A stretch of 64,000 nt of DNA from Tubulanus polymorphus (taxonomy: Eukaryota > Animalia > Nemertea), in contig NC_134032.1 in NCBI RefSeq assembly GCF_964204645.1, forward strand, positions 9,474,275 to 9,538,274, read 5' to 3'. This document shows, piece by piece, positions 15,719 through 44,944 of the stretch. The notes under the pieces were generated by a model that was not told where the DNA came from, did no database searches, and was given only the letters and a program-made list of their open reading frames with translations. The translations under genes and the position numbers were made by a program. Numbering within the stretch: the first letter of the stretch is position 1; every line of letters starts with the position of its first letter.

Positions 15719-16487
15719 TATTATCTCATATGCCTCGGAGAATAAAAGATGTAAACAAATAAATCAAATTTAAGATACCGAATGCTTATAAACATGGCGG
15801 AATACCCAACATATGGCACCAGCTTTCATTAACAAAACAATAGCTAATGGCCGCGCAATGAAAACTTCTAAAGCGAATATTGTCTAAAAATCTAAAACTG
15901 TTTATGACTGCGAATGCCACAATTTTGTATGGTTTATTTCCAATGTAAAAACATACCATCGTTGATCCAGCGTTAGCTGAAACTGTCGACGCAAGCCCCA
16001 ATAAATCATTTGCAATCGTCAGAATCCACCACAATGACGCAAAAGCGGACTTGAAGATAGCGCTTTGTGCTGTTAGTCGACCGAACCAGAACGGATATAG
16101 ATGACCATATCTAAAGGTAAGTCTGTCGCTTGCCGCATAACACACCCGCATCGAAAACAAATCGAGTGATTGAGACACTGGTTGCTCCTCTGAGGATTTA
16201 TCTTGAACTTTTGTAGGATCTCAGAGGTAACGGTGATTATAGTAACGCAAGCTGCCTCAATTATCAGTAATGCCAAACTAACAATACAGACAATCTACAG
16301 GACTGCACTGAAACCGGGTCTTACAAGAACTATACTTATCTTCTTCCAGTCGGCCAGATTTGTGGACAGATCAATGACATAAATCCTGGGGAACGTATGC
16401 TGCTTCCTCGTCAGTTGAGCCGTTGTCAACCAAACCTTTTTGATCCGCATCTTTATCTTCCGTTGTCAGTTTAAATTCATCGAGCTT
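15719..16487 (-). pseudogene. Decayed SLC18A-like transporter copy (psi-A)
   Basis: RLTFRYGHLYPFWFGRLTAQSAIF...ANAGSTMV in the ORF track; start codon mutated (AAG at 16485-16487), frameshifts, and a large internal deletion joining the TM5 region to the TM11 region near 15885. Confidence 0.88.
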
Positions 16488-17609: not shown

Positions 17610-18490
17610 TTACCATGCTTCTAAGGTCACCACAAAAATTGTAGAGTTCGAGACGGAAAGAAATATGTAAATAGAATTTGAAATACCGATACTAATAAAT
17701 GTAGCCGTATACCCAACGTACGGCTGTATGGAACCGATATTGAAAAGTAAGATAAAGACTGGCTTAAACATTCGAAGCGAATATTGTCTCTTGATCGTAT
17801 TTCTGATGAGCAATATCTGACACCAGCAAACTTAACGCTTATAAATAAATCAAATCCGTCAAATTGCAAAACCGAACATATATAACCATCGTATCGACAC
17901 AACATCAAAATTTCTACAATAATGTCTGATGTATTTTCGAATGCCCTGGATATAACTGTTGACCCGGACTTAGCCACGAATGCTTCCGCCGGTCCTACTA
18001 ACGTATGTGCATAATAATCTGCTGAATCCACCACAATGACGCCAAAACACACATGAAGATAGCGCTTTGTGCTGTTCGTAGACCAAACCAGAATGGATAT
18101 AGATGACCATATTTGAAGGTAAGTCTGCCACTCAGTACATTATCAAAAATCATTCCCGCATCGAAAGTAAATCGAGTAACACGGAAACCTTTACAGTTAC
18201 CCGTTGGTCCTCCGAGGATTTTTTTTTTAATTCTTGAAGAATCTCAGAAGTAACGGTGATTATATACCACTACGTCATGCTGCAGCACAGTAATGCCTAA
18301 CAAACAATACAGACAATAAAAACTACAGGACTGCACTGTGAACCTGGTCTTACAGGAACTAGAACCTCTCTTCTTCAGGTACTTTGTAGACAGTATCAAT
18401 GGTAGCTATGCATTCTGTTTCCTAGAAAATTGCGTCTTTTTCAACCAAATGTTCTCTATCTTCTCCGTAACTTTCAAACCATTGGGCACC
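17610..18490 (-). pseudogene. Decayed SLC18A-like transporter copy (psi-B)
   Basis: Fragments homologous to the intact copies (IQPYVGYTATFISIGI; tagatgaccatatttgaaggt; acaggactgcactg), with many indels and a central deletion. Confidence 0.85.
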
Positions 18491-19932: not shown

Positions 19933-21315
19933 TTACGTCATCACCAGATTATCTCCTATCCCTCTAAGAATAGAAGACGTAAGCGAATAAACCAAATTCA
20001 AAATACCGATGCTTATAAATATGGCTGTATACCCAACATATGGTTGCATGGCACCGGCTATCATCAGCAAAACAGTAGCTAATGGCCGACCAATAAAGAT
20101 ATCTAAAGCCAGTATTGTCTCGTAATGTTGATCGTATTTCTGATCTGCAGCATCTGACAACCAAGAATAATAAAATCCACCGAACAGACTAAGTGCCAAC
20201 GTATAGATGCTATCCGGACCGAAAGCGTGCCAGATATTACTAATAAACGGATAAGAAAACATTGAAATTGTCGCTAGAAGGCAATAAATCATAGCGTAAA
20301 TCCATCGGTAGTTTCTAGTTTTAGACACAATAAATCCAAACATGTTTGTAGCAATAATGAAGAGAACTGCTGATGACAGTCTTACAGTCGCTAGTTTCCA
20401 ATTTGCCATCGTAAAACTGTCCAAAATCCATAATGGTAGCAACGTGTAATATGTGATATACATGGTACAATCCATAAAGTTGATGCCGAGTAAGACAACT
20501 GTTTGCGCGTCAGTGAGCATTGCTTTCACAACGCTGAGCTGGAATTGAGATTCTGTTTTTGAATCGCCGATGTTGTTCGGTATATCCACGAAGGTGCGAA
20601 TAAGAATCGTTATCCCTATCGCAGCAAAAAGGATCCAGAATGGAGTAGCGCGCCCGATCAATTGAACCTCGTACAAAGCAACCGCAAAACCAAAGGCGTT
20701 TCCACCAAATCTACAACTGTATATAACCGCAAATGCCAAGATTCGGTCCGATTTATTTTCAAAAGTAAAAGATAGCATCGTTGACCCGGCATTAGCTACA
20801 AATGCTACCGCAAGTCCTACTAACGTATTTGCAACCGCCAGAATCCACCACAATGACGCAAAAACAGAAATGAAGATAGCGCTTTGTGCTGTTAGTAGAC
20901 CAAACCAGAACGGATATAGATGACCATATTTAAAGGTGAATCTGCCACTCAGTACATTACCAAAAATCATTCCCGCATCGAAAGTAAACCGAGTAACGGA
21001 AACCTTTACGGTTACCTGTTGGTCCGCCGAGGATTTATTTTGAATATCCTGTAGGATATCAGAAGTAATGGTGATAATAGTACCACAAGTTGCTTCCATT
21101 ATCAATAATGCCAAACTAACAATACACACAATAACTACAGGACTGCACTGAAACCGCATCTTACAAGAACTACACTTTCCTTCTTCTGGTATATCACTGT
21201 GAGAGAGAGTATCAATAGCTCCGTATTCAGTTTCCTCGCCAGTTTCGCCATTGTCAACCAATTCTTTTTTATCCTCATCCTTATCTCCTGTCGTCATTTT
21301 AAATTCATTGAGCAT
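19933..21315 (-). CDS. Intronless MFS transporter, divergent SLC18A (VMAT/VAChT) family, copy 1 (460 aa)
   Basis: ~12 hydrophobic segments; long ungapped matches to recalled VMAT2 sequence (LPLWILDSFTMANWKLA ~ LPIWMMETMCSRKWQLG; IATNMFG ~ IGTNIFG; RWIYA ~ RWLCA; PFISNIWHAFGP ~ PFAKNIYGLIAP; VGYTAIFISIGILN ~ IGFPWLMTIIGIID). Confidence 0.9.
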   Translation of the reverse strand: MLNEFKMTTGDKDEDKKELVDNGETGEETEYGAIDTLSHSDIPEEGKCSSCKMRFQCSPVVIVCIVSLALLIMEATCGTIITITSDILQDIQNKSSADQQVTVKVSVTRFTFDAGMIFGNVLSGRFTFKYGHLYPFWFGLLTAQSAIFISVFASLWWILAVANTLVGLAVAFVANAGSTMLSFTFENKSDRILAFAVIYSCRFGGNAFGFAVALYEVQLIGRATPFWILFAAIGITILIRTFVDIPNNIGDSKTESQFQLSVVKAMLTDAQTVVLLGINFMDCTMYITYYTLLPLWILDSFTMANWKLATVRLSSAVLFIIATNMFGFIVSKTRNYRWIYAMIYCLLATISMFSYPFISNIWHAFGPDSIYTLALSLFGGFYYSWLSDAADQKYDQHYETILALDIFIGRPLATVLLMIAGAMQPYVGYTAIFISIGILNLVYSLTSSILRGIGDNLVMT

Positions 21316-23012
21316 CGTTACTGATGACTATACAACTGGTTGCGATTGGTTTCATGTGAATATCAGATCACACTCGATACTTACTGCAAAATAACGTTCA
21401 CAGTGGTTATCGATAAAATCTGTGATCGGATGTTACCAATTAGGTTTAGTTAGAAGTTCCATGGTGCTAATCTTGTCAAAGAATAATCAATACGTTCACC
21501 CCAGTCCACGTTCGATACATAGTAATGTTATTTTTTTCAAAGCATATGTTACTTGTGGTGACCTCCGTATAGCACAAGGAATGAGTGAATAAAAGCTATT
21601 TTTAGAATACCCCAAGTATACGGATTTTGTTAGACATTTATTACTGCCCTTTTATGGTACGAATTCGTAATGAATGATCGCGACACTGCTTAAATTGACC
21701 TCAAAGCGAACTTGCATTTTCTAAGTAGCACTGCTCATTACTGACTTTCTTTTCAATCTGCATGCAAATGCAAGCGGTAAATGCATGCACATGAGAAATT
21801 GCACATGAGAAATGAAAGGCGAACATAAAACAGAGAAAACTAAAACTGGTTTAATCAAAAGCTTTGATGAGCAGATGGGTTTTGAGATGAGATTTAAAAA
21901 TATCAATTGAAGGACTAGATTTAATTGGACTAGGTAAATTATTCCACAGTACTGGGGCAGAGTACGCAAAGCCGCCTCTACGCCTGGCTGAGACAGGATT
22001 TTTGCGGGGAATTACTTACCCAAGGTTACTTCGAGCCTACTGCCTAAACATGAAACTGAAGAATAATGCTATTCTTATGTCCAGTTTATAGTGAACGTCA
22101 CTTTGAGTTGTTTTAACTTCAAACAATCCCTAAAGGAGTTTTAATTATAGTATCAGCATAGACTTCATCGTATTTCGACGAAGTCTTCTAAAAGGCTCTT
22201 GAGTCCGTCCGGAAATGATTGCTCACAAAATGCTGCGTATCGATACTCTTCTTTTAATTGTACTGTACAATTTCGATGAGCGATTAGTGCCATTTAAACC
22301 ATTACCAATCAAACAGGAATCAATATGAAAAGAATTCTGCGAAAAGTATTAAGACGTATAGCGCTGGTCACTTCAGTGTATTTCCACCTTAAAGACTCCC
22401 ACAAAGCAAGTATTACCAATAGCATCATTATTTAATACAATTTCATTATCAGTTGTCTCGAAGAATAAAAGATATAAACGAATAAGTAAAATTTAAAATA
22501 CCGATGCTTATGAATATGGCTGTATACCCAACATATGGTTGTATGACTCCAGCTATCAATAGCATAACCGTAGCTAATGGCCGCCCAATAAAAACGTCTA
22601 AAGCCAATATTGTCTCGTAATGTTGATCGTATTTCTGATCTGCAGCATCTGACAACCAAGAATAATAAAATCCACCGAACAGACTAAGTGCTAATGTATA
22701 GATGCTATCCGGACCGAAAGCTTGCCAGATATTACTAATAAACGGATAAGAAAACATTGAAATTGTAGCTAGAAGGCAGTAAATTATAGCGTAAATCCAT
22801 CGGTAATTTCTAGTTTTAGACACAATAAATCCAAATATATTTGTAGTAACAATAAAGAGAACTGCTGATGACAGTCTTACAGTCGCTAGTTTCCAATTTG
22901 CCATCGCAAAACTGTCCATAATCCATAATGGTAACAGCGTGTAATATGTGATATACATGGTACAATCCATAAAGTTGATTCCGAGTAAGACAACTGTTTG
23001 TGCGTCAGTGAG
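20663..23012. repeat. Near-identical segmental duplication with 32970-35320 (offset 12307)
   Basis: 5' half of copy 1 + 1.1-kb spacer + 3' half of copy 2 equals 5' half of copy 5 + spacer + 3' half of copy 6; identical spurious ORFs at 21721/34028 and 22432/34739. Confidence 0.95.
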
Positions 23013-23809
23013 CATGCTTTCACAACAATGAGCTGGAATTAAGTTTCTGTTTTTGAATCGTCGTGGTTGTTCGGTATTTCAATGAAGGCACGCATGAGTA
23101 TCGTTAGCCCTAAAGCAGCGAAAATGATCCAAAATGGAGAAGCGCGCCCGATCAATTGAACCTCGTACAAAGCAATCGCAAAACCGATGGAATTTCCACC
23201 GACTCGAGAACTGTATATGACCGCAAATGCCACAACTCTGTCCGATTTATTTTCGAAAGCAAAATACACCATCGTTGACCCAGCGTTAATAACGAATCCT
23301 ACTGCCAGCCCTACTAACGAATTTGCAATCGTTAGAATCCACCAGAAAGACGCAAAAGCGGACATAAAGATAGCACTTTGTGCTGTTAGTAGACCGAACC
23401 AGAACGGATATAGATGTCCGAATTTGAAGGTAAGTCTACCACTAAGAAAAGTGCCAAAAAGCACTCCTGCATCGAAAGCAGATTTAGTAATCGAAACCTT
23501 TACAGTTATCCGTTGGTCCTCCGAGGATTTGTTTTGAACTTCCTTCAGGAGATCAGATGTAACGAAAATTACAGTTCCACAAGCTGTTTCCAGTATCAGT
23601 AAGACCATACTAACAATACACACAATAACCACAGGACTGCACTGAAACCGCATCTTACAAGAACTCGTCTTTTCTTCTTCTGTTACTTTAGAGAGAGTAT
23701 CAACAGCTCCGTATTCGGTTTTGTCGACAGTTGCGCCATTGTCAACCAATCCTTTTCTATCCGCATACTCATCTTCCGTCGGCACTTTCAGTTCATTGAG
23801 CAGCATCAT
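22449..23809 (-). pseudogene. SLC18A-like copy 2, split in the central loop (N-half 23039-23809, C-half 22449-23015)
   Basis: CAA>TAA at 23039-23041 plus a 1-nt deletion (agcattgc>agcatgc) near 23015; the C-half protein is identical to that of copy 6; otherwise no lesions. Confidence 0.88.
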
Positions 23810-23914
23810 TTGCGGTTGTGATGGGTGGTAATTGGTGAAATCGGTTGCTGGAAACATAACATAGATACGTCACATTTTTGTGAACGTCGCGGTAAAATAA
23901 AATGCAGGTCATTA

Positions 23915-24463: not shown

Positions 24464-27035
24464 TGACTTAACCCAGTTTAAGATTAACGCCCACTTAAAA
24501 ATATTGCTCGAAGATTTGTCCATGATGATTTATGGTCACATGATATTGTGATTAGAATTGATTATTTGAGTCCATAATATGGTTAAGATCAGGAAATCAA
24601 ACTTGAATATAATTATAAATCAAATTATTTAGCCTAACAATTATCATGAAATGTATATCCCCATTTCGTACTCTGTAGCTGTATAGTATCAACTGTAGAC
24701 CTACTGAAAAAATGATGATTTAATCAATCCCTGATATATCTATAATTTTGATTTAGTTTTGAAATAGTTATGACAGGCGATCAAACTAAACATAACTATG
24801 ATAGAATAACCAATCAATTATACTTATCATTGAAATGTTAGCATAATCATGACAAAATGAAAATGATTAAATATATAGTAATTGTAAAATAATCTAAAAA
24901 TAATTAGATAGAGTAATTGTTATTCAATGTAGTTATGATTAGGTGGTTAAATTGATTAATCCACAGGATAGTTATCAATAAAAAATTTGAATGTAGTTAA
25001 TGAATCAATAATACATCATTCATGTTTATTAAGAACAATATAAAATGACATTCATCTCGCAGATAATACACAATGATTAGGTGTATACCCAACCAAAACT
25101 GTAGCTCATGGAATGCAAGTGTCTATATCAACCCTTCGTAGCTCAGGTGGTAAAGGTAATAGAACCGGGTTCTTACCGGGCAGAACTCGTAGAAGTTTCT
25201 GCGCAAATTCTGCGTATAAGACCTCCACTGGAGACAAAACAGAGGAACTGTAGATTTTGCAATGGAACTGATCTTGAAGATGAATATCATCTTATTCTAA
25301 AATGCTCTAGATTTCACGATTTACGATGGAAATTTATAAAACCTTATTATTATAGATAACCATTTGTACATAGATTTATTCAGTTATTGAGAACACAAAA
25401 TGGGAACGAATTTCTGAAATCAGGTGATTACTGTATCATAGGTCCGAAAAGAATCCAAACATTTATATGATTTAGTTTAACATCAGCGTTGGTATATCCT
25501 CGACCTCACTACTTTACAAATTGACGGGTGCCGATACAGAAACGGCGTTACATTGAATGTACTGTATTTATAGAAATTTATTGTAATGAAATTAAGGACC
25601 ATGATGGTCTATTTCAGTAAACTTAAACTTAAAACTTAAAACATATTTCGGTCAATCCAAAGATTGCGAATGGTCTCTGGAAGGTACATAAACGTATATT
25701 TCATTATTTCAATGAAAATAATACAGAAATACGTGTAGACTATGATAGAGTCAGTGAATTGACGATAACAGTCTGAACAAGGCCAAAAAGGCTGTACAAG
25801 CACTGGCAGATTCCCCGTGAAAAAAGTTAAACGATAAGTAACACGATTGATATCATTCTAATGATTATTTTGCGCTTTGAAACTTACCACGTGAAATTCG
25901 ATGAAGGTTCGAGTAAACAGACAAAATTTCACTACGAGCGTGTTTTGCCGACACTTCAAGGGACGTAATAAGGTTGTTACTGCAAAGTATTCGAGCGTTA
26001 GTCCAGGTAACAAATCTCAGTCGACACTTATGCTTTATGGCACATCCTTTGATCCGTTAGGGAATTAGAAAAAAAAACAACTCTTGTGGCTTGCGGAACT
26101 TTTGCGATTATCAAACGATGAAAAAATTCCAAAAGCATCACCGCCTATCGGTGTTACCATATCAACGTGCCAGTGCAGTTTGAGCCAAAAGTAAAGTAAA
26201 TTATAGTAAGGTAATGTAAAGTTTATGGAGCAGCCACCTTCGACTAGTTCGCCATCTGGCGGAAAATTATGTCAGTCACTGATCTCATTACGTCATCACC
26301 AGATTATCTCCTATCCCTCTAAGAATAGAAGACGTAAGCGAATAAACCAAATTTAAAATACCGATGCTTATAAATATGGCTGTATACCCAACATACGGTT
26401 GTATGGCACCGGCTATCATCAGCAAAACAGTAGCTAATGGCCGACCAATAAAGATATCTAAAGCCAGTATTGTCTCGTAATGTTGATCGTATTTCTGATC
26501 TGCAACGTCTGACAACCAAGAATAATAAAATCCACCGAACAGACTAAGTGCCAACGTATAGATGCTATCCGGACCGAACGCATGCCAGATATTACTTATA
26601 AACGGATAAGAACACATTGAAATTGTCGCGAGAAGGCAATAAATCATAGCGTAAATCCATCGATATTTTCTAGTTTTAGACACAATAAATCCAAACATGT
26701 TTGTAGCAATAATGAAGAGAACTGCTGATGACAGTCGTACAGTCGCTAGTTGCCAATTTGCCATCGTAAAACTGTCCATAATCCATAATGGAAGCAACGT
26801 GTAATATGTGATATACATGGTACAATCCATAAAGTTGATTCCGAGTAAGACAACTGTTTGCGCGTCAGTGAGCATTGCTTTCACAACGCTGAGCTGGAAT
26901 TGAGATTCTGTTTTTGAATCGCCGATGTTGTTCGGTATATCCACGAAGGTACGAATAAGAATCGTTATCCCTATTGCAGCAAAAAGGATCCAGAATGGAG
27001 TAGCGCGCCCGATCAATTGAACCTCGTACAAAACA
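24464..27035. repeat. Segmental duplication of 16553-17295 joined to 18783-20680
   Basis: Colinear high identity; the junction at ~25200 (agaagtttct|gcgcaaattctgcg) skips ~1.5 kb present in the first copy. Confidence 0.92.
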
Positions 27036-27670
27036 CTCGCAAAACCAAAGGCGCTTCCACCGAATCTACAACTGTATATAACTGCAAATGCCACAACTCT
27101 GTCCGATTTATTTTCGAAAGCATAGGATACCATCGTTGACCCAGCATTAACTGTGATTGCCACTGCAAGCCCTAATAACGAATTTGCAATCGCCAAAATC
27201 CACCACAATGACGCATAAACGGACATGAAGATAGCGCTTTGTGCTGTTAGTAGACCGAACCAGAACGGATATAGATGACCATATTTGAAGGTGAGTCTAC
27301 CACTTAGAAAAGTGCCAAAAATCACTCCTGCATCGAAAGCAGATCGAGTGATTGAAACTTTTACAGTTATCCGTTGGTCCTCCGTGGATGTATTTTGGAC
27401 TTCCTTTAGGAGATCAGATGTAACGATAATTACAGTTCCACAAGCTGTTTCCAGTATCAGTAAGGCCATACTAACAATACACACAATAACCACAGGACTG
27501 CACTGAAACCGGATCTTACTAGTACAACATCTTTCTTCTTCTGTTACCTTCGAGAGAGTATCAATAGCTCCGTATTCAGATTCCTCGTCAGTTGCGCCAT
27601 TGTTAACCAATACTTCTCTATCCGCATCTTTATCATCCGTCGTCACTTTCAAATCATTGAGCAGCATCAT
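26288..27670 (-). CDS. Intronless SLC18A-like MFS transporter, copy 3 (460 aa)
   Basis: Intact ORF, paralog of copy 1; C-terminal half and 3' flank nearly identical to copy 1. Confidence 0.9.
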   Translation of the reverse strand: MMLLNDLKVTTDDKDADREVLVNNGATDEESEYGAIDTLSKVTEEERCCTSKIRFQCSPVVIVCIVSMALLILETACGTVIIVTSDLLKEVQNTSTEDQRITVKVSITRSAFDAGVIFGTFLSGRLTFKYGHLYPFWFGLLTAQSAIFMSVYASLWWILAIANSLLGLAVAITVNAGSTMVSYAFENKSDRVVAFAVIYSCRFGGSAFGFASVLYEVQLIGRATPFWILFAAIGITILIRTFVDIPNNIGDSKTESQFQLSVVKAMLTDAQTVVLLGINFMDCTMYITYYTLLPLWIMDSFTMANWQLATVRLSSAVLFIIATNMFGFIVSKTRKYRWIYAMIYCLLATISMCSYPFISNIWHAFGPDSIYTLALSLFGGFYYSWLSDVADQKYDQHYETILALDIFIGRPLATVLLMIAGAIQPYVGYTAIFISIGILNLVYSLTSSILRGIGDNLVMT

Positions 27671-29379: not shown

Positions 29380-30696
29380 TCAGTTGTCTCGTAGAATAAA
29401 AGATGTAAACGAATAAGTAAAATTTAAAATACCGATGCTTATGAATATAGCTATATACCCAACATATGGTTGTATGACTCCAGCTATCAATAGCAAAACC
29501 GTAGCTACTGGCCGCCCTATAAAAACGTCTAAAGCCAATATTGTTTCGTAATGTTGATCGTATTTCCAATCTAATACATCTGACAACCAAGAATAATAAA
29601 ATCCATCGAACAGACTAAGTGTTAATGCATAAATACTATATGGACCGAACGCTTCCCAGATGTTGCTAATAAACGGATAAGAACACATTGAAATTGTCGC
29701 TAGAAGGCAATAATTCATAGCGTATATCCATCGGCAATTTCTAGTTTTAGACACAATAAATCCAAATATATTTGTAGTAACAATAAAGAGAACTGCCGAT
29801 GACAGTCTTACAGTCGCCAGTTTCCAATTTGTTATCGTAAAACTGTCCATAATCCATAATGGTAGCAACGTGTAATATGTGATATACATGATACAATCCA
29901 TGAAGTTGATGCAGAGTAAGACAAATGATTGTGAGTCAGTGAGCATGCTTTCACAACAATGAGCTGGAATTAAGTTTCTGTTTTTGAATCGTCGTGGTTG
30001 TTCGGTATTTCAATGAAGGCACGCATGAGTATCGTTAGCCCTAAAGCAGCGAAAATGATCCAAAATGGAGAAGCGCGCCCGATCAATTGAACCTCGTAAA
30101 AAGCAATCGCAAAACCGATGGCATTTCCACCGACTCGAGAGCCGTATATGACCGCAAATGCCACAACTCTGTCCGATATATTTTCGAAAGCAAAAGACAC
30201 CATCGTTGACCCAGCGTTAGCTACGATTGCTACGTAGCGGACAAAAGCGGACATCAAAATTGCGCTTTGTGCTGTTAGTAGACCAAACCAGAACGGATAG
30301 ATGACCATATTTGAAGGTGAGTCTACCACTTAGAAAAGTGCCAAAAATCACTCCTGCGTTGAAAGCAGATCGAGTGCTTGAAACTTCTACAGTTATCCGT
30401 TGGTCGTCTGAGCATGTATTTAGGACTTCCTTTAGGAGATCAGATGTAACGAAAATTACAGTTCCACAAGCTGTTTCGAGTATCAGTAAGGCCATACTAA
30501 CAATACAGACAATAACCACAGGACTGCACTGAAACCGGATCTTACTAGTACAACATCTTTCTTCTTCTGTTACCTTCGAGAGAGTATCAATAGCTCCGTA
30601 TTCAGATTCCTCGTCAGTTGCGCCATTGTTAACCAATACTTCTCTATCCGCATCTTTATCATCCGTCGTCACTTTCAATTCATTGAGCAGCATCAT
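29380..30696 (-). pseudogene. SLC18A-like copy 4, disrupted
   Basis: 2-nt deletion at ~30298 (ggatatagatg>ggatagatg), deletion in the TM3-TM4 region at ~30233-30240, the same TAA + 1-nt deletion as copy 2 at 29946-29972, and many missense changes. Confidence 0.9.
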
Positions 30697-32260: not shown

Positions 32261-33622
32261 TCAGATGCCTCGTAGAATAAAAGATGTAAACAAATAAATC
32301 AAATTTAAGATACCGACGCTTATAAATATGGCTGTATACCCAACATACGGTTGTATGGCACTGGCTATCATAAGTAAAGCAATAGCTAATGGCCGACCAA
32401 TAAAAACATCTAATGCGAAAATTGTCTCGTAATGTTGATCGTATTTCTGATCTGCAACATCTGACAACCAAGAATGATAGAATCCACCCAGCAAACAAAG
32501 GGCCAATGTATAGATGCTATCCGGACCGAACGCTTGCCAAATATTACTAATAAGCGGATAAGAAAACATTGAAATCGTCGCTAGAAGGCAATAAATCATA
32601 GCGTAAATCCATCGATAGTTTCTAGTTTTAGATACAATAAATCCAAATACATTTGTAGTTATAACAAAGAGAACTGCTGATGATAGTCTCACGGTCGCAA
32701 GTTGCCAATTTGCCACCGTAAAACTGTCCATAATCCATAATGGTAACAGCGTGTAATATGTGAAATACAGGATGGCATCCATAAAGTTGATGCCGAGTAA
32801 GACTACTGTTTGCGCGTCAGTGAGCATTGCTTTCACAACACTGAGCTGGAATTGAGTTTCTGTTTTTGAATCGTCGTGGTTGTTCGGTATATCCATGAAA
32901 GCTCGAATAAGTATCGTTAGCCCTAATGCAGCAAAAAGGATCCAAAATGGAGTACCGCGCCCGACCCACTGAACCTCGTACAAAGCAACCGCAAAACCAA
33001 AGGCGTTTCCACCAAATCTACAACTGTATATAACCGCAAATGCCAAAATTCGGTCCGATTTATTTTCAAAAGTAAAAGATAGCATCGTTGACCCGGCATT
33101 AGCTACAAATGCTACCGCAAGTCCTACTAACGTATTTGCAACCGCCAGAATCCACCACAATGACGCAAAAACAGAAATGAAGATAGCGCTTTGTGCTGTT
33201 AGTAGACCAAACCAGAACGGATATAGATGACCATATTTAAAGGTGAGTCTGCCACTCAGTACATTACCAAAAATCATTCCCGCATCGAAAGTAAACCGAG
33301 TAACGGAAACCTTTACGGTTACCTGTTGGTCCGCCGAGGATTTATTTTGAACATCCTGTAGGATATCAGAAGTAATGGTGATAATAGTACCACAAGTTGC
33401 TTCCATTATCAATAATGCCAAACTAACAATACACACAATAACTTCAGGACTGCACTGAAACCGCATCTTACAAGAACTACACTTTCCTTCTTCTGGTATA
33501 TCACTGTCAGAGTGAGTATCAATAGCTCCGTATTCAGTTTCCTCGCCAGTTTCGCCATTGTCAACCAATTCTTTTTTATCCTCATCCTTATCTCCTGCCG
33601 TCATTTTAAATTCATTGAGCAT
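32261..33622 (-). CDS. Intronless SLC18A-like MFS transporter, copy 5 (453 aa)
   Basis: Intact ORF; N-terminal ~215 aa nearly identical to copy 1, C-half distinct (DAILYFT, CLLGGFYHS). Confidence 0.9.
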   Translation of the reverse strand: MLNEFKMTAGDKDEDKKELVDNGETGEETEYGAIDTHSDSDIPEEGKCSSCKMRFQCSPEVIVCIVSLALLIMEATCGTIITITSDILQDVQNKSSADQQVTVKVSVTRFTFDAGMIFGNVLSGRLTFKYGHLYPFWFGLLTAQSAIFISVFASLWWILAVANTLVGLAVAFVANAGSTMLSFTFENKSDRILAFAVIYSCRFGGNAFGFAVALYEVQWVGRGTPFWILFAALGLTILIRAFMDIPNNHDDSKTETQFQLSVVKAMLTDAQTVVLLGINFMDAILYFTYYTLLPLWIMDSFTVANWQLATVRLSSAVLFVITTNVFGFIVSKTRNYRWIYAMIYCLLATISMFSYPLISNIWQAFGPDSIYTLALCLLGGFYHSWLSDVADQKYDQHYETIFALDVFIGRPLAIALLMIASAIQPYVGYTAIFISVGILNLIYLFTSFILRGI

Positions 33623-34755: not shown

Positions 34756-36141
34756 TCAGTTGTCTCGAAGAATAAAAGATATAAACGAATAAGTAAAATT
34801 TAAAATACCGATGCTTATGAATATGGCTGTATACCCAACATATGGTTGTATGACTCCAGCTATCAATAGCATAACCGTAGCTAATGGCCGCCCAATAAAA
34901 ACGTCTAAAGCCAATATTGTCTCGTAATGTTGATCGTATTTCTGATCTGCAGCATCTGACAACCAAGAATAATAAAATCCACCGAACAGACTAAGTGCTA
35001 ATGTATAGATACTATCCGGACCGAACGCTTGCCAGATATTACTAATAAACGGATAAGAAAACATTGAAATTGTAGCTAGAAGGCAGTAAATTATAGCGTA
35101 AATCCATCGGTAATTTCTAGTTTTAGACACAATAAATCCAAATATATTTGTAGTAACAATAAAGAGAACTGCTGATGACAGTCTTACAGTCGCTAGTTTC
35201 CAATTTGCCATCGCAAAACTGTCCATAATCCATAATGGTAGCAACGTGTAATATGTGATATACATGGTACAATCCATAAAGTTGATGCCGAGTAAGACAA
35301 CTGTTTGTGCGTCAGTGAGCATTGCTTTCACAACTCTGAGCTGGAATTGAGTTTCTGTTTTTGAATCGTCGTTGTTGTTCGGTATTTTGATGAAGGCACG
35401 CATGAGTATCGTTAGCCCTAAAGCAGCGAAAATGATCCAAAATGGAGTAGCGCGCCCGATCAATTGAACCTCGTACAAAGCAATCGCAAAACCGATGGAA
35501 TTTCCACCGACTCGAGAACTGTATATGACCGCAAATGCCACAACTCTGTCCGATTTATTTTCGAAAGCAAAAGACACCATCGTTGACCCAGCGTTAGCTA
35601 CGATTGCTACTGCAAGCCCTACTAACGAATTTGCAATCGTCAGAATCCACCAGAATGACGCAAAAGCGGACATAAGGATAGCGCTTTGTGCTGTTAGTAG
35701 ACCAAACCAGAACGGATATAGATGTCCGTATTTGAAAGTAAGTCTACCACTAAGAAACGTGCCAAAGATCATTCCTGCATCGAAAGCAGATCGAGTAATT
35801 GAAACTTTTACAGTTATCCGTTGGTCCTCCGTGGATGTACTTTGGACTTCCTTCAAGAGATCAGATGTAACGATAATTACAGTTCCACAAGCTGTTTCCA
35901 GTATCAGTAATGCCAAACTCACAATACAGACAGTAACCACAGGACTGCACTGAAAGCGAATCTTATAAGAACTACACTTTTCTTCATCTGGTACTCTAGA
36001 GAGAGTATCAATAGCCCCGTATTCCATTTCCTCATCGGTTTTTCCAACCAGACTTTTTCCATCCGTATCTTCATCTTCCGTCATCATTTCAAATTCATTG
36101 AGCATCATCATATTACGGTTGACAATTAACGATGGATGCAA
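34756..36141 (-). CDS. Intronless SLC18A-like MFS transporter, copy 6 (likely start ATG at 36111, ~451 aa)
   Basis: Intact ORF; paralogs begin at MM(M/L)LNE, which corresponds to 36111; the ORF-track start at 36141 is not an ATG. Confidence 0.9.
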   Translation of the reverse strand: MHPSLIVNRNMMMLNEFEMMTEDEDTDGKSLVGKTDEEMEYGAIDTLSRVPDEEKCSSYKIRFQCSPVVTVCIVSLALLILETACGTVIIVTSDLLKEVQSTSTEDQRITVKVSITRSAFDAGMIFGTFLSGRLTFKYGHLYPFWFGLLTAQSAILMSAFASFWWILTIANSLVGLAVAIVANAGSTMVSFAFENKSDRVVAFAVIYSSRVGGNSIGFAIALYEVQLIGRATPFWIIFAALGLTILMRAFIKIPNNNDDSKTETQFQLRVVKAMLTDAQTVVLLGINFMDCTMYITYYTLLPLWIMDSFAMANWKLATVRLSSAVLFIVTTNIFGFIVSKTRNYRWIYAIIYCLLATISMFSYPFISNIWQAFGPDSIYTLALSLFGGFYYSWLSDAADQKYDQHYETILALDVFIGRPLATVMLLIAGVIQPYVGYTAIFISIGILNFTYSFISFILRDN

Positions 36142-40146: not shown

Positions 40147-41345
40147 ATGGGGCCTAAACCACGAGGAGTCAATTCGACAGTAAATACTGCACCCAAAAAA
40201 AAGTCACAAAATTCGAAATGTAAATCGGTGGCAACTCCTAAAGATAGTGCTAGTAAGCAGACGGAAACAGAGCAGCCTTCTACTGAGGAAAACCGCAAAA
40301 AAGAGATCGCTCAGAAGGCTCCCTAAATACCTCTGGCGACGCTCCCAATCCATCAAAAAAATGCGCAACAGAGGATCATATGGGCAGTGAGAGCGAATAT
40401 CAAACAGACGCCGAGGATGATGAAATCTCCAACAAAATGCTACTAAATGAGATACGCAAGATGAAAATTACTCTCGAAAGGAAGATCGACTGTAAGTTTA
40501 ATCAGCTCAAACAAGAGATGGAGTTATACAAAACTGAAATCGAAAAAAACATTGATTTCCAAATACAAAATGCGAAAGACGAACTGAGAACCGAACTAAG
40601 AAACGAATTCAGTAGCAAAATATGCGATTTAGAAAAAACAACTACACGTCAGCCGAGTGGTCAAAGATTGCGATTGCTCGAAGACCGTCTAATCGACCAA
40701 GAAGCGAGAGCACGCCGTAGCAACCTTGTTTTTGTAGGAGTGCCAGAATCAGATATGAATTGCGAATTACAAATTCGCGAATCGCTTATAAATTCATTTC
40801 AGATGGATAGAACACAGGTTACAAATATGGTATTCCAGCGAACACATAGGAACCCTACTTACGTGGGCCCAAACACCAAGTTGCCGCGATCTATAACCGT
40901 TAAGTTTAGAGATTATTGCGATCGCACTTCAGTCTATCAAGCGCGGAAAAATGCAATTACAGATACGAAAATCCGAATTTATGAGGATTTTCCACTGGAA
41001 ATACGAGCGAAACGCAAAATTCTCCTCGATAAGCTACGTGAAATCATAGCGAAAGAACCCCACGTGAAAGCATTTGTTACGTATGATAGGTTAGTGTATA
41101 AATCAGATTCATTCAAAGTTATCGATAGCGAAATAGTGAAAGTTACGCGTTGGTCACCAGTGGGTAACGGAAAACCAAACATGAGATCACCACCGACAGG
41201 AGCGAATACGCACAGCCGAAGCCTGGCCGATCAGGCAGTCCGAAACCCCACTATCGCCGCAGAACACCAACCGAAAAACCAACAAAAACCGGTGGACAAT
41301 CCGACACCAACGGCAGAAAACCCGATGGACAGCACAAAAACATAA
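40147..41345 (+). CDS. LINE ORF1 (coiled coil + L1-type RRM/CTD); likely starts at ATG 40147 with a 1-nt frameshift near 40300, open from 40380
   Basis: Coiled-coil heptads followed by RRSNLVFVGVPE, HR...PRSITVKF and IYEDFP...R motifs typical of L1-like ORF1p. Confidence 0.85.
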
Positions 41346-41366
41346 ATGTAAGAGCCTGATGATACG

Positions 41367-44300
41367 ATGCTCACCCTAGATCAACCGTTAAATCCCAAAT
41401 CCCCCAATGCGAATAACAATCTCATCGATCTAAGCGATATAATTTCGAATGCGCGAGCCGCGTTAGAAAACGAATAGGAAACTGTCGAGCGTAACATACA
41501 ATCGTCTGGCCTTCCTAACTTTGATAAGTTGCGGTTATATAGTTTAAACGTCGGTGGATTAAAAACAAAGATAGACTCCTTGGATTTCAACACCTTTTGT
41601 ACACTCGCAGATATTATTGTATTAACAGAAACTAAAATTGATGAAACAGACGAATTATGGGTCAAAGAATATTTTGATACGCTTGGTTTCTATGTGGTAA
41701 TGAACAATAGATTTAAATTAGCTCTGAGAAAATCGGGGGGTATATTAATTGCCATAAGGAAAGATCTTAATAGCTATGTTAAAGTTCTACCAAAAACATC
41801 AAGCCATGTACTTTGGGTTGAACTGAATAAGTCGTACTTAGGTTGGGATAAAAACCTGACCTTGGGAGGTGTATACATACCACCGGTGTCGAGTAGTTAC
41901 GGAAAAACTGAAATGTTTGACCAACTAGATACAGATATGATTAATTTAACGTCAGATAATGATACATTTATTTGTTTATGCGGCGACTTTAATGCATATA
42001 CTAAAGAGTTACCGGATTACGTTGTGCATGATGAAAATTTGATTAATATTCTAGCTATAAATGAGATATTCCATGAATCTGCTAATAGTCTAGCTGTAAT
42101 GATAAATGGTGGTTTTTTAAGCAGAAAAAATAAGGACAAATACGTGAATAACTGGGGTTATCGATTATTAGAGCTGTGTAAAAATCATAATATATTTGTA
42201 GCAAATGGAAGATTAGGAAAAGATCAGGGCGTTGGAGAATTTACTTGTGTAAAGGGCGTAAATCATCATGTTGTGGATTATATTTTAATGTCAGCTGAAC
42301 TTTTCACGAAATGCTCTGATTTTAATGTTATGGACTTTGACCGTATACGGTCCGATGTTCATTGTGCTATTTATTGTACTCTAGCCTCAGATTGTAATAT
42401 TGAAAGGAATGAGTTTCTACCACCCAGAGAGAAGGGCAAAATCCGGTGGTCAAAAGATAAAGAGGGTCTCTTTAGGAATGCTATTGACCAACAGAAATTA
42501 AGTCAGTTAAATCTTGATCTAAACGATAACAAAATAAATTGTGAAACTGCGAATAATATTTTAACGGAGACATTGATTGGAGCTTCCGAACGTACAATGG
42601 GTAGAAAAAAGATTGTTTCAGAAAATAATCGTAAAAAGCCGTTTTTATCTGACCCTGAAGTTTTAAAACACCGAAAATGTTATAGGCGAGCAAGAAAGAG
42701 CTGTAAAAGACACCCAACACCACAACGAAGAACACACATGAATTTGGCTTATAGGAAATACAATTTGGCTATTAAAAAAGCGAAACAAAAATACCTTTTG
42801 GATCAAAATAACCTTTTGAAAAAACTGTCGAAAACCGATCCAAGAGCTTATTGGAAGTTTTTTTCTAAAGCCAAACAAAATGTTTGTAAAGCCTCCCTAT
42901 CTGACCTTTTTCATCATTTTTCAAAACTAAATCAAATACCAACAGACGACGACGATGATAGTAATTATTTTGATGTAAATAACTTTATCGATGTTGACAA
43001 TGACGACGCCCTCAATCGAGTCATTACGGAATCGGAAATTTCTAAATGTATAAAGAAACTTAAGAATAACAAGGCACCTGGATGTGACGAGATACTGAAC
43101 GAATTCCTTAAAACCTCTGAAGATATAATAATGCCCACTTTAGTCAATCTCTTTAATAAGGTCCTGGAAACTGGGATTATCCCTGAGAACTGGACAATTG
43201 GTAAAGTTACACCTATTTTTAAGAACAAAGGCGAGCCACGTGATCCGGACAATTATCGGGGAATCACATTACTGAGTTGTATTAGTAAGTTATTCACAAG
43301 TATATTAAACGATCGTCTCCATGAATTTCTTGAATCAAATGAACTCCTGAATAGAAATCAAGCCGGATTTCGAAAAAATCATAGCATTTTGGATCACATT
43401 TTCACCCTTCACTCAGTAATTGACACCCTTTTTAGTAAGAAGCGAAAGCTCTATTGTATTTTTATTGACTACCAAAAGGCATTTGATACAATATGGCGAA
43501 AGGCACTGTGGCACAAACTTATCTCAACAGGTATCACCGGAAATATCCTAAACGTAATTCATAATATGTATAAACATATCAAATCCATGGTTCACGTGCA
43601 GGGTCAATCCTCAGGTTGTTTTCTTAGTAACATAGGATTGAGACAAGGGGAAAATTTATCGCCAGTGCTTTTTTCTATATTTGTCAATGACCTTTTGCTT
43701 CATTAATTGAAAGTGGTTGTCAAGGGATTTCATCTCCCTTCGAAAACGAAGATCTATGGGTTCAGCTACTAGTTCTGCTGTACGCAGATGATACGATCTT
43801 ATTGGCCGATAGTGCAAGTGCACTTCAGAAAAACCTCGATATGTTGGTCGCTTATTGTAAAAGGTGGAAATTAGTAATCAATATTAGTAAAACTAAAGCC
43901 ATTGTATTCGAAAAAAGGAAGTCTATTAGACAACCCGTATTTAATATCGATGGAGTATTAATCGAAACTGTATCTGAATTTAAATATTTAGGTGTGCTTT
44001 TTAATTATACAGGAAACTTTGCAAAATGTAAAAAGCTGATTTGTGACCACGCAAAGAAGGCGCTTATATTTGTTCTTAAGAAAGTTCAACATTTTTCTCT
44101 TGACTTTGATACTGCTTTCCAAGTCTTTGACGCAATGGTTGGATCGATTTCAACATCTGGTTGTGAGGTGTGGGGCTTTGGAAATTTTGATGTTATTGAA
44201 AAAATTCATTTAACATTTTGTACATATCTGCTAAGCCTCAAGAGGTCAACACCAAATTTGATGATATACGGTGAGACAGGAAGGTTTCCATTTGAAATTC

Positions 44301-44944
44301 GTATCAAAGTTCGTATGGTAAAATTTTGGGGACACTTGATCCTGCATGAAGAGACATACTCTGGTAAAATGTACCGCATTCTTTATAATAGTCATTTAAA
44401 TGGTTCGCAAAGTAAATGGATATCCTGTATCAAATCAATCTTACAGAATTGTGGTCTTGGTAATATATGGTTGGAACAAACTTTTCCGAATATTCCCTAC
44501 CTTGGGGAACTCGTAAAACTTAGATTAGAAGATCAATTTAAACAGACATGGCATGGATCGATGGTACTATCCTCTAAATTAGATACGTATAGAATATTTA
44601 AAACTGATTGGGGACAAGAAAAATATCTTTCATCACCTCCACGAAGTTTAAGAATCTCACTATGTAGATTTAGATGTTCCAACCATAAATTACCAATAGA
44701 GACTGGTAGATATGAAAACAAACCACGGAACGAACGAGTTTGTAATAAATGTAACGAGAATACTATTGGGGACGAATGTCATTTCATACTGAAGTGCGAA
44801 TTTTTCAACGCTTTTAGAATTTTGTATATACCTAACAGATATAGAATTGGCGCAAATCATTATAAATTCAAGCAATTGCTCAGTAATGAAAACCTGTATT
44901 ACAGTCTATCTAAATACATTACGACTGCTACACGGTTGTTATAG
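41367..44944 (+). pseudogene. LINE ORF2: apurinic endonuclease + reverse transcriptase + C-terminal Cys/His motif; TAG at 41475 and 1-nt frameshift at ~43703
   Basis: NVGGL, LTET, GDFNA, VDY, SDVH (APE); KAPGCD, NYRGITLL, QAGFR, FIDYQKAFD, GLRQGENLSP, LLYADD (in the shifted frame at ~43775-43792), FKYLG; SNHKLPIETGRY...CNKC...DECHFILKC. Confidence 0.93.

Follow-up and report, generated by a model that had tools for sequence, protein, structure and literature searches.

Intronless SLC18-like transporters of the nemertean Tubulanus polymorphus with apparently re-sited charges in the substrate pocket

The SLC18 transporters are known from textbooks as cation/proton antiporters in which the buried charges form a constant set. 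In VMAT2 (SLC18A2) this set comprises four acids, D33, E312, D399, and D426, and two bases, K138 and R189. E312 and D399 are essential to amine binding and transport (PMC10959523, PMC11695631), and transport is abolished in the mutants E312Q and R189A (PMC10959523). The luminal gate is formed by F135, W318, and F334, the last of which also contacts 5-hydroxytryptamine (PMC10959523, PMC11695631), while the walls of the drug and substrate site include L228, V232, and I308, with L228 lining the binding site of tetrabenazine (PMC11695631). N305 hydrogen-bonds D399, and N388 is the hydrogen-bond partner of E312 (PMC10959523). Here we describe a gene for an SLC18-like transporter of the major facilitator superfamily (MFS), the focal gene, and its paralogues in the genome of the palaeonemertean Tubulanus polymorphus. 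The focal gene belongs to a tandem array in the window, i.e., the whole stretch of 64,000 nucleotides that was analysed (contig NC_134032.1, here C8, positions 9,474,275 to 9,538,274); its features are collected in Table 1.

These genes probably constitute a functional family of intronless MFS transporters, known so far only from T. polymorphus, in which the pocket charges have been re-sited and the pockets are diversifying. The family would descend from SLC18 (VMAT/VAChT-like) stock, outside the clade of VMATs and VAChTs, and would have abandoned the amine site, with Tyr in place of E312, Gly in place of D399, Phe in place of K138, and Asn in place of R189. As judged from the sequence, the case that the VMAT amine site has been given up is solid, and no VMAT-like amine binding is to be expected.

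Residues were mapped onto VMAT2 by HMMER alignments of the focal protein and of the family profile (native VMAT2 numbering) and, independently, by aligning 134 SLC18-like proteins with MAFFT. The two approaches agree in replacing R189 by N163, L228 by R202, V232 by N206, E312 by Y290, F334 by R312, Y341 by F319, and D399 by G379, and in retaining W318 as W296. A preliminary description of the stretch had proposed the replacements at positions 189, 228, 312, 334, 341, and 399 from a manual alignment, all of which are upheld, and the additional Arg in transmembrane helix (TM) 11 and Asp in TM7 which it had noticed are present as R410 (VMAT2 position 430) and D282. The residue set is common to all four intact copies in the window, as it had stated, and its account of E312 and D399 as amine-binding carboxylates that are lost here agrees with the VMAT2 structure papers (PMC10959523, PMC11695631). 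For three residues that it regarded as kept, its statements are accurate, though only to within a few residues. The acid of TM1 is present as E74, but it aligns to N34, adjoining D33; the Asp of TM11, D405, pairs with D426 given one local gap (HMMER) and otherwise, ungapped, with A425 (MAFFT); and the basic residue near K138 is R109, at the gate position F135, three residues ahead of K138, whose own position is taken by F112. In VMAT2, L228 and F334 are cavity-lining or luminal-gate residues, so that R202 and R312 would by homology lie inside the cavity. Among about 110 SLC18-like proteins from outside Tubulanus, position 228 is basic in a single case and position 334 in none, and the residue pattern is thus not due to chance.

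A six-frame search of the 268-Mb genome assembly yields at least 21 intact single-exon paralogues of 437 to 533 amino acids (aa), 39 to 91% identical to the focal protein. They fall into two residue classes, subfamily I (n = 11, including the window copies) and subfamily II (n = 10). Subfamily I has R202, R312, and W296 in all 11 members and G379 in 10, with the acids E74 (8/11), D282 (8/11), and D368 (10/11). In subfamily II position 202 is N in six of the ten members and Y, S, I, or A in the rest, position 312 is I, L, M, or V, position 296 is L, position 379 is T or N, position 74 is N in nine members, position 282 is Y or F, and position 368 is C, S, D, or H. Family-wide residues are D or E at 113 (18/21), D405 (20/21), and R410 (20/21). 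In place of the VMAT2 E312, 17 of the 21 paralogues have Y or F and none has an acid; the counterpart of D399 is G, T, or N in 20, with D in one paralogue only (L012), and that of R189 is N, H, D, Y, or S, and never Arg.

Counted by homology, the focal protein has about five buried acids (E74, D113, D282, D368, and D405) and about four buried bases (R109, R202, R312, and R410). Compared with VMAT2, the net charge of the pocket would shift by about +1 and keep its sign. The pocket was previously described as charge-inverted, which is not supported, as by this count the sign is unchanged, the new acids E74, D282, and D368 accompany R202 and R312, and D113 and D405 are family-wide. The charges look moved rather than reversed. 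To each lost VMAT2 charge a new one nearby can be set: to K138 (TM2) R202 (TM5), placed by homology opposite the TM1 acid E74; to R189 (TM4) R312 (TM8); to E312 (TM7) D368 (TM10), at the position of N388, its hydrogen-bond partner; and to D399 (TM10) D282 (TM7), adjoining its partner N305. Between the subfamilies acids and bases are gained or lost jointly, a pattern suggestive of relocated ion pairs. In subfamily I, a base would have moved to TM5 (R202), facing E74, and another to TM8 (R312), facing the new TM10 acid D368, with D282 arising as an acid of TM7 next to where D399 had been, so that the pair D33–K138 would be re-sited as E74–R202 and E312–R189 as D368–R312. In subfamily II, neutral residues would have replaced all these re-sited charges.

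The pocket is also the more variable part of the membrane domain. For 26 positions called cavity, gate, or polar-network in the VMAT2 papers, the mean column entropy is 1.84 bits, versus 1.20 bits for 249 other membrane positions (Mann–Whitney p 4.8e-5). A fixed single substrate would give the reverse, and the variability is therefore read as diversification of specificity among the paralogues. The family may thus be a repertoire of transporters with differing small-molecule specificities, none of them binding monoamines or acetylcholine in the canonical way.

The relationship to SLC18 is seen at the level of both sequence and fold. The 460-aa focal protein matches Pfam MFS_1 with 57.9 bits (cut-off 33.4; E 1e-15). 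In a phmmer search of Protein Data Bank (PDB) chain sequences its best matches are VMAT1 (8e-18) and VMAT2 (about 4e-17), with VAChT far behind (5e-6), and a profile built from the 21 paralogues finds VMAT2 at E 5e-31 (111 bits for the human protein) and VAChT at 2e-11. The AlphaFold2 (AF2) model, computed from the 21-sequence family alignment, has 12 TM helices (predicted local distance difference test score, pLDDT, 76.7; predicted template modelling score, pTM, 0.77), and the top 43 among the 50 listed Foldseek matches to it are all VMAT1, VMAT2, or VAChT (template modelling score by target 0.76–0.85). The 12-helix VMAT-like fold is kept, and the near-invariant buried D405 in TM11, close to D426, is the likely proton-coupling site by analogy with VMAT2.

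VMAT1 and VMAT2 are the best sequence matches among solved structures and also the best fold matches (Foldseek score by target 0.79–0.85), sharing the 12 helices, W318, and the Asp within one residue of D426. However, identity is only 18–22%, E312, D399, K138, and R189 are all replaced, the D33–K138–D426 polar network is not kept (F112 for K138, and the acid at N34 instead of D33), and there are new arginines at positions 228, 334, and 430 and at the F135 gate and new acids at positions 139, 304, and 388. The family also lacks the long glycosylated luminal loop 1 and the cytosolic C-terminal tail, its genes have no introns, and the Tubulanus clade is placed outside VMAT+VAChT. In the AF2 model loop 1, between TM1 (residues 59–92) and TM2 (101–130), has eight residues, as against about 90 in VMAT2. 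Most paralogues stop two residues beyond the conserved Arg closing TM12. Seven further residues are present in the focal copy and in its twin at 26288–27670, the focal protein thus ending nine past that Arg. VAChT (SLC18A3) has the same fold (score by target 0.78–0.83), and many VAChT genes are likewise intronless, but its profile match is weaker and its signature (W334, F338, H341, E312, D399, and D426) is missing, the focal protein having R312, A316, F319, Y290, and G379.

The N-terminal tail is acidic, variable, and disordered, with residues 1–54 below pLDDT 50 in the model. It contains a YxxO-type motif (Table 1), in which the invariant Tyr-Gly is followed by one small and then one hydrophobic residue. 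The motif resembles a tyrosine-based sorting signal and would fit an organellar location; the proteins are probably organellar and probably proton-coupled.

In a maximum-likelihood tree of 86 rows, the 21 genes form one clade with a cluster on contig C4 and a gene on contig C12 (Shimodaira–Hasegawa-like approximate likelihood-ratio test, SH-aLRT, 100; branch of 1.26 changes per column). VMATs and VAChTs form a group without it (SH-aLRT 99), and an approximately unbiased (AU) test on a reduced set of 37 rows (LG+G4) rejects a grouping of the clade with VMATs (p 0.0003, log-likelihood difference 51), the group having been named after the tree was seen. An origin from VMAT by retroposition was considered and set aside, as the tree and the AU test speak against a position sister to VMAT; long-branch effects are possible. 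The clade falls on the side of a loose group of orphans, made up of lophotrochozoan proteins (Lineus, Owenia, Lingula, and Macrostomum) and of further Tubulanus genes, which are likewise automatically annotated as "VMAT-like". Most of the orphans sampled also lack E312 and D399, but they keep K138 and R189, have neither the TM5 and TM8 arginines nor the Asp/Arg pair of TM11, and are separated from the Tubulanus clade by its long branch.

Subfamily II is nested within subfamily I (SH-aLRT 83 and 94). The sister cluster C4:1035000-1053000 (L032) comprises four tandem single-ORF (open reading frame) genes of about 508–525 aa with K at VMAT2 position 228, N at 312, G at 399, and D33 kept, and the further sister, C12:999966-1001063 (L028), is a single ORF of 520 aa with R at 228, K at 334, and D33 kept. 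As these sister clades have K or R at 228, keep D33, and lack K138, the TM5 base is old in the clade and was lost in subfamily II.

Pairwise ratios of nonsynonymous to synonymous substitution rates (dN/dS) among the five closest copies are 0.28–0.41 (dS 0.16–0.38), and recent copies are under purifying selection. This speaks against the notion that the copies are decaying, non-functional retrocopies whose odd pocket residues arose by drift, a very improbable explanation, although the genes are intronless and the array includes two broken copies and several fragments. Moreover, 21 ORFs of 437–533 aa are still open at 39–91% identity, 42 columns of the family alignment are invariant, helix glycines among them, there is a tail motif as well, the pocket states are consistent and subfamily-specific, and the AF2 model is confident across the membrane domain. 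Two observations that would fit decay also weigh against the functional family preferred here: the gene left no trace in the single possible RNA run (2015), and most copies are missing from the protein databases, 3 of the 21 intact paralogues being annotated in the protein collections. (The other sequencing runs containing the gene are assembled contigs that span genes and spacers alike and look like DNA.) Further points against it are that there is only one transition from subfamily I to subfamily II, making the coupled change of acids and bases a single evolutionary event and not a replicated covariation; that the orientation of side chains, the ion pairs, and the electrostatics of the cavity are taken over from VMAT2 by homology alone; that the alignment is uncertain by one residue in TM1 and TM11; that the exact placement of the clade is unsure owing to its long branch; and that the family may seem absent from other species because palaeonemertean genomes are missing or unannotated.

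Two other readings concern the cargo of functional transporters. In MFS carriers of anions, such as GlpT/UhpT, OxlT, and SLC17, cargo is bound by paired cavity arginines, situated on helices of the N and C halves. A cavity turned net positive, with two or three new arginines binding an anionic or zwitterionic cargo, would be in keeping with the loss of both amine-binding carboxylates, with Arg at two positions that line the cavity or gate of VMAT2 and are essentially arginine-free outside the Tubulanus clade among the ca. 110 SLC18-like proteins, and with the subfamily I member L006, which has K instead of E at 74, some arginines being left without an obvious partner. It is nevertheless unlikely: by the homology-based count of about five buried acids and four bases the net charge is not positive, the arginines come and go with E74, D282, and D368 and are thus accompanied by matching acids, both are absent in 10 of the 21 paralogues, and anion-carrying MFS proteins have no detectable sequence relationship to the family and do not occur among the 50 listed Foldseek matches. 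Of the switch away from cationic amines proposed in the preliminary description, the loss of the VMAT amine site is upheld; an anionic cargo, though possible, is not the preferred reading, a zwitterionic one is possible too, and re-sited ion pairs fit the pattern at least as well. It is rather improbable that the Arg-bearing subfamily serves to fill an organelle or secretory granule with a small molecule of anionic or zwitterionic character; a candidate cargo would be a secreted or defensive metabolite of the mucus or proboscis glands. If it were so, these would be the first carriers of non-cationic cargo in the SLC18 lineage, and their hypervariable pockets a chemically diverse repertoire for vesicular loading.

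It is somewhat easier, if still doubtful, to imagine a cation/proton antiporter for another cation (a polyamine, a guanidinium compound, or an alkaloid), in which the arginines gate the cavity or tune pKa values and the acids have moved from D399 to D282, from E312 to D368, and from D33 to E74, with D426 kept as D405. The cavity acids (four) and paired bases (two) would then equal those of VMAT2 in number and lie at neighbouring sites, near-invariant D405 and the VMAT-like fold would be accounted for, and small-molecule toxins are reported from nemerteans (PMC6410017). Spatial equivalence of the moved acids is an assumption, however; the VMAT2 mutants E312Q and R189A kill transport, so that the site is not easily rebuilt, and subfamily II lacks most of the re-sited acids.

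With the functional, diversifying family as the preferred explanation, a scaffold has been kept while every ion pair seems to have moved to a new helix and, in the sister subfamily, to have been removed. Such a family would amount to a natural test of the charges that are indispensable to an MFS antiporter. It would also be a large set of orphan transporters that evolve fast, in an animal with chemical defences, and the automatic labels "VMAT-like" and "VAChT-like" borne by its few annotated members would mislead inventories of nemertean neurotransmitter systems. The genome has canonical genes of its own, a VAChT encoded by a single ORF at C4:3856107 (L035) with the full residue signature and a multi-exon VMAT at C2:10309604-10315546, whose exons, viewed one by one, are 43–87% identical to abalone VMAT; the window genes thus add to the neurotransmitter loaders and do not replace them.

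The restriction of the family to Tubulanus is seen in a search with the family profile against 1.84 billion representative proteins, in which only four have E values below 1e-30, all of them from Tubulanus. The best match from elsewhere is a protein of the nemertean Lineus longissimus (120 bits, as against the 111 bits of human VMAT2 in the PDB search), which is one of the lophotrochozoan orphans, and outside the Tubulanus genome no relative among these representatives exceeds the ordinary score level of VMATs. Three proteins from a word-index search were rejected as independent relatives, being identical to the ORFs L008, L009, and L022 of the same genome, the three annotated paralogues. The four window copies are not among the annotated proteins and may be unannotated. 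SLC18B1, the vesicular polyamine transporter, was considered as the parent family; its name occurs in none of the 26 matches looked up by name from the 150 best, names only being compared, and a literature search found no paper on nemertean SLC18 proteins.

Most of the intact paralogues are located on contig C8, where they form several tandem arrays together with many broken copies. A second array, C8:16384533-16399149, comprises five intact paralogues (L012, L014, L016, L018, and L021), four of subfamily II and L012; some have long insertions rich in Asn, Gln, and Ser within the N-terminal tail. The RefSeq models of the C4 cluster, named "VAChT-like", are 294–400 aa long, below the length of the open frames. 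There are at least eight more single-ORF SLC18-like orphans, e.g., at C9:4457444, C9:5131653, C6:20622149, C5:4864606, and C4:21610150, which group with the orphans of Lineus, Owenia, and Lingula; E312 and D399 are missing from every one that was extracted. T. polymorphus has unusually many divergent SLC18-like genes.

Table 1. Features of the transporter array in the window and key codons of the focal gene (window coordinates)
Feature	Position	Strand	Remarks
Focal SLC18-like MFS transporter gene, subfamily I	19933..21315	(-)	Single open frame, 460 aa, intronless
Y31-G-A-I34, YxxO-type motif in N-terminal tail	21214..21225	(-)	Columns Y31 and G32 invariant in family alignment
E74 codon (TM1), N34 position beside D33	21094..21096	(-)	Alignments, codon checked
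TM2 stretch R109...D113 (R109 at F135 gate, F112 at K138, D113 adjoining)	20977..20991	(-)	Alignments, codons checked
N163 codon (TM4), in place of R189	20827..20829	(-)	Alignments, codon checked
R202 codon (TM5), VMAT2 L228 position	20710..20712	(-)	Alignments, codon checked
D282 codon (TM7), new acid, A304 position adjoining N305	20470..20472	(-)	Family residue table
Y290 codon (TM7), in place of amine-binding E312	20446..20448	(-)	Alignments, codon checked
R312 codon (TM8), VMAT2 F334 luminal-gate position	20380..20382	(-)	Alignments, codon checked
D368 codon (TM10 start), new acid, N388 position	20212..20214	(-)	Family residue table
G379 codon (TM10), in place of D399	20179..20181	(-)	Alignments, codon checked
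TM11 stretch D405...R410, near-invariant Asp/Arg pair	20086..20103	(-)	D405 at most one residue from D426
Intact paralogue, 460 aa, 85% identical to focal protein	26288..27670	(-)	ORF
Intact paralogue, 453 aa, 91% identical to focal protein	32261..33622	(-)	ORF
Intact paralogue, 451 aa counted from first ATG, 81% identical	34756..36111	(-)	ORF
Broken copy	22449..23857	(-)	TAA for Gln codon at 23039-23041; one base lost at about 23015
Broken copy	29380..30696	(-)	N- and C-terminal pieces, decayed middle with three TAA stops
Decayed copy fragment	15879..16484	(-)	54% identity, four stops
Decayed copy fragment	18016..18366	(-)	55% identity, one stop

The window contains four intact copies, two broken copies, and smaller decayed fragments, all on the (-) strand. 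Between 19933 and 30696 the array resembles a duplicated unit of two genes, an intact copy followed by a broken one, with a spacing of about 6.4–6.9 kb. Contigs of the sequencing run X2, from another sample, have an extra T after 23014 and G at 23041, which would cure both lesions of the first broken copy. A polymorphism is not claimed, as the identity of these contigs is only about 96% and they may derive from the near-identical copy at 34756–36111. The array is adjoined by a LINE-type (long interspersed nuclear element) retrotransposon at 40380–44944 on the (+) strand; its ORF1 (321 aa) has no Pfam match, and the endonuclease and reverse-transcriptase domains are those of its ORF2, which is broken up into two frames, 41529–43706 and 43802–44944.

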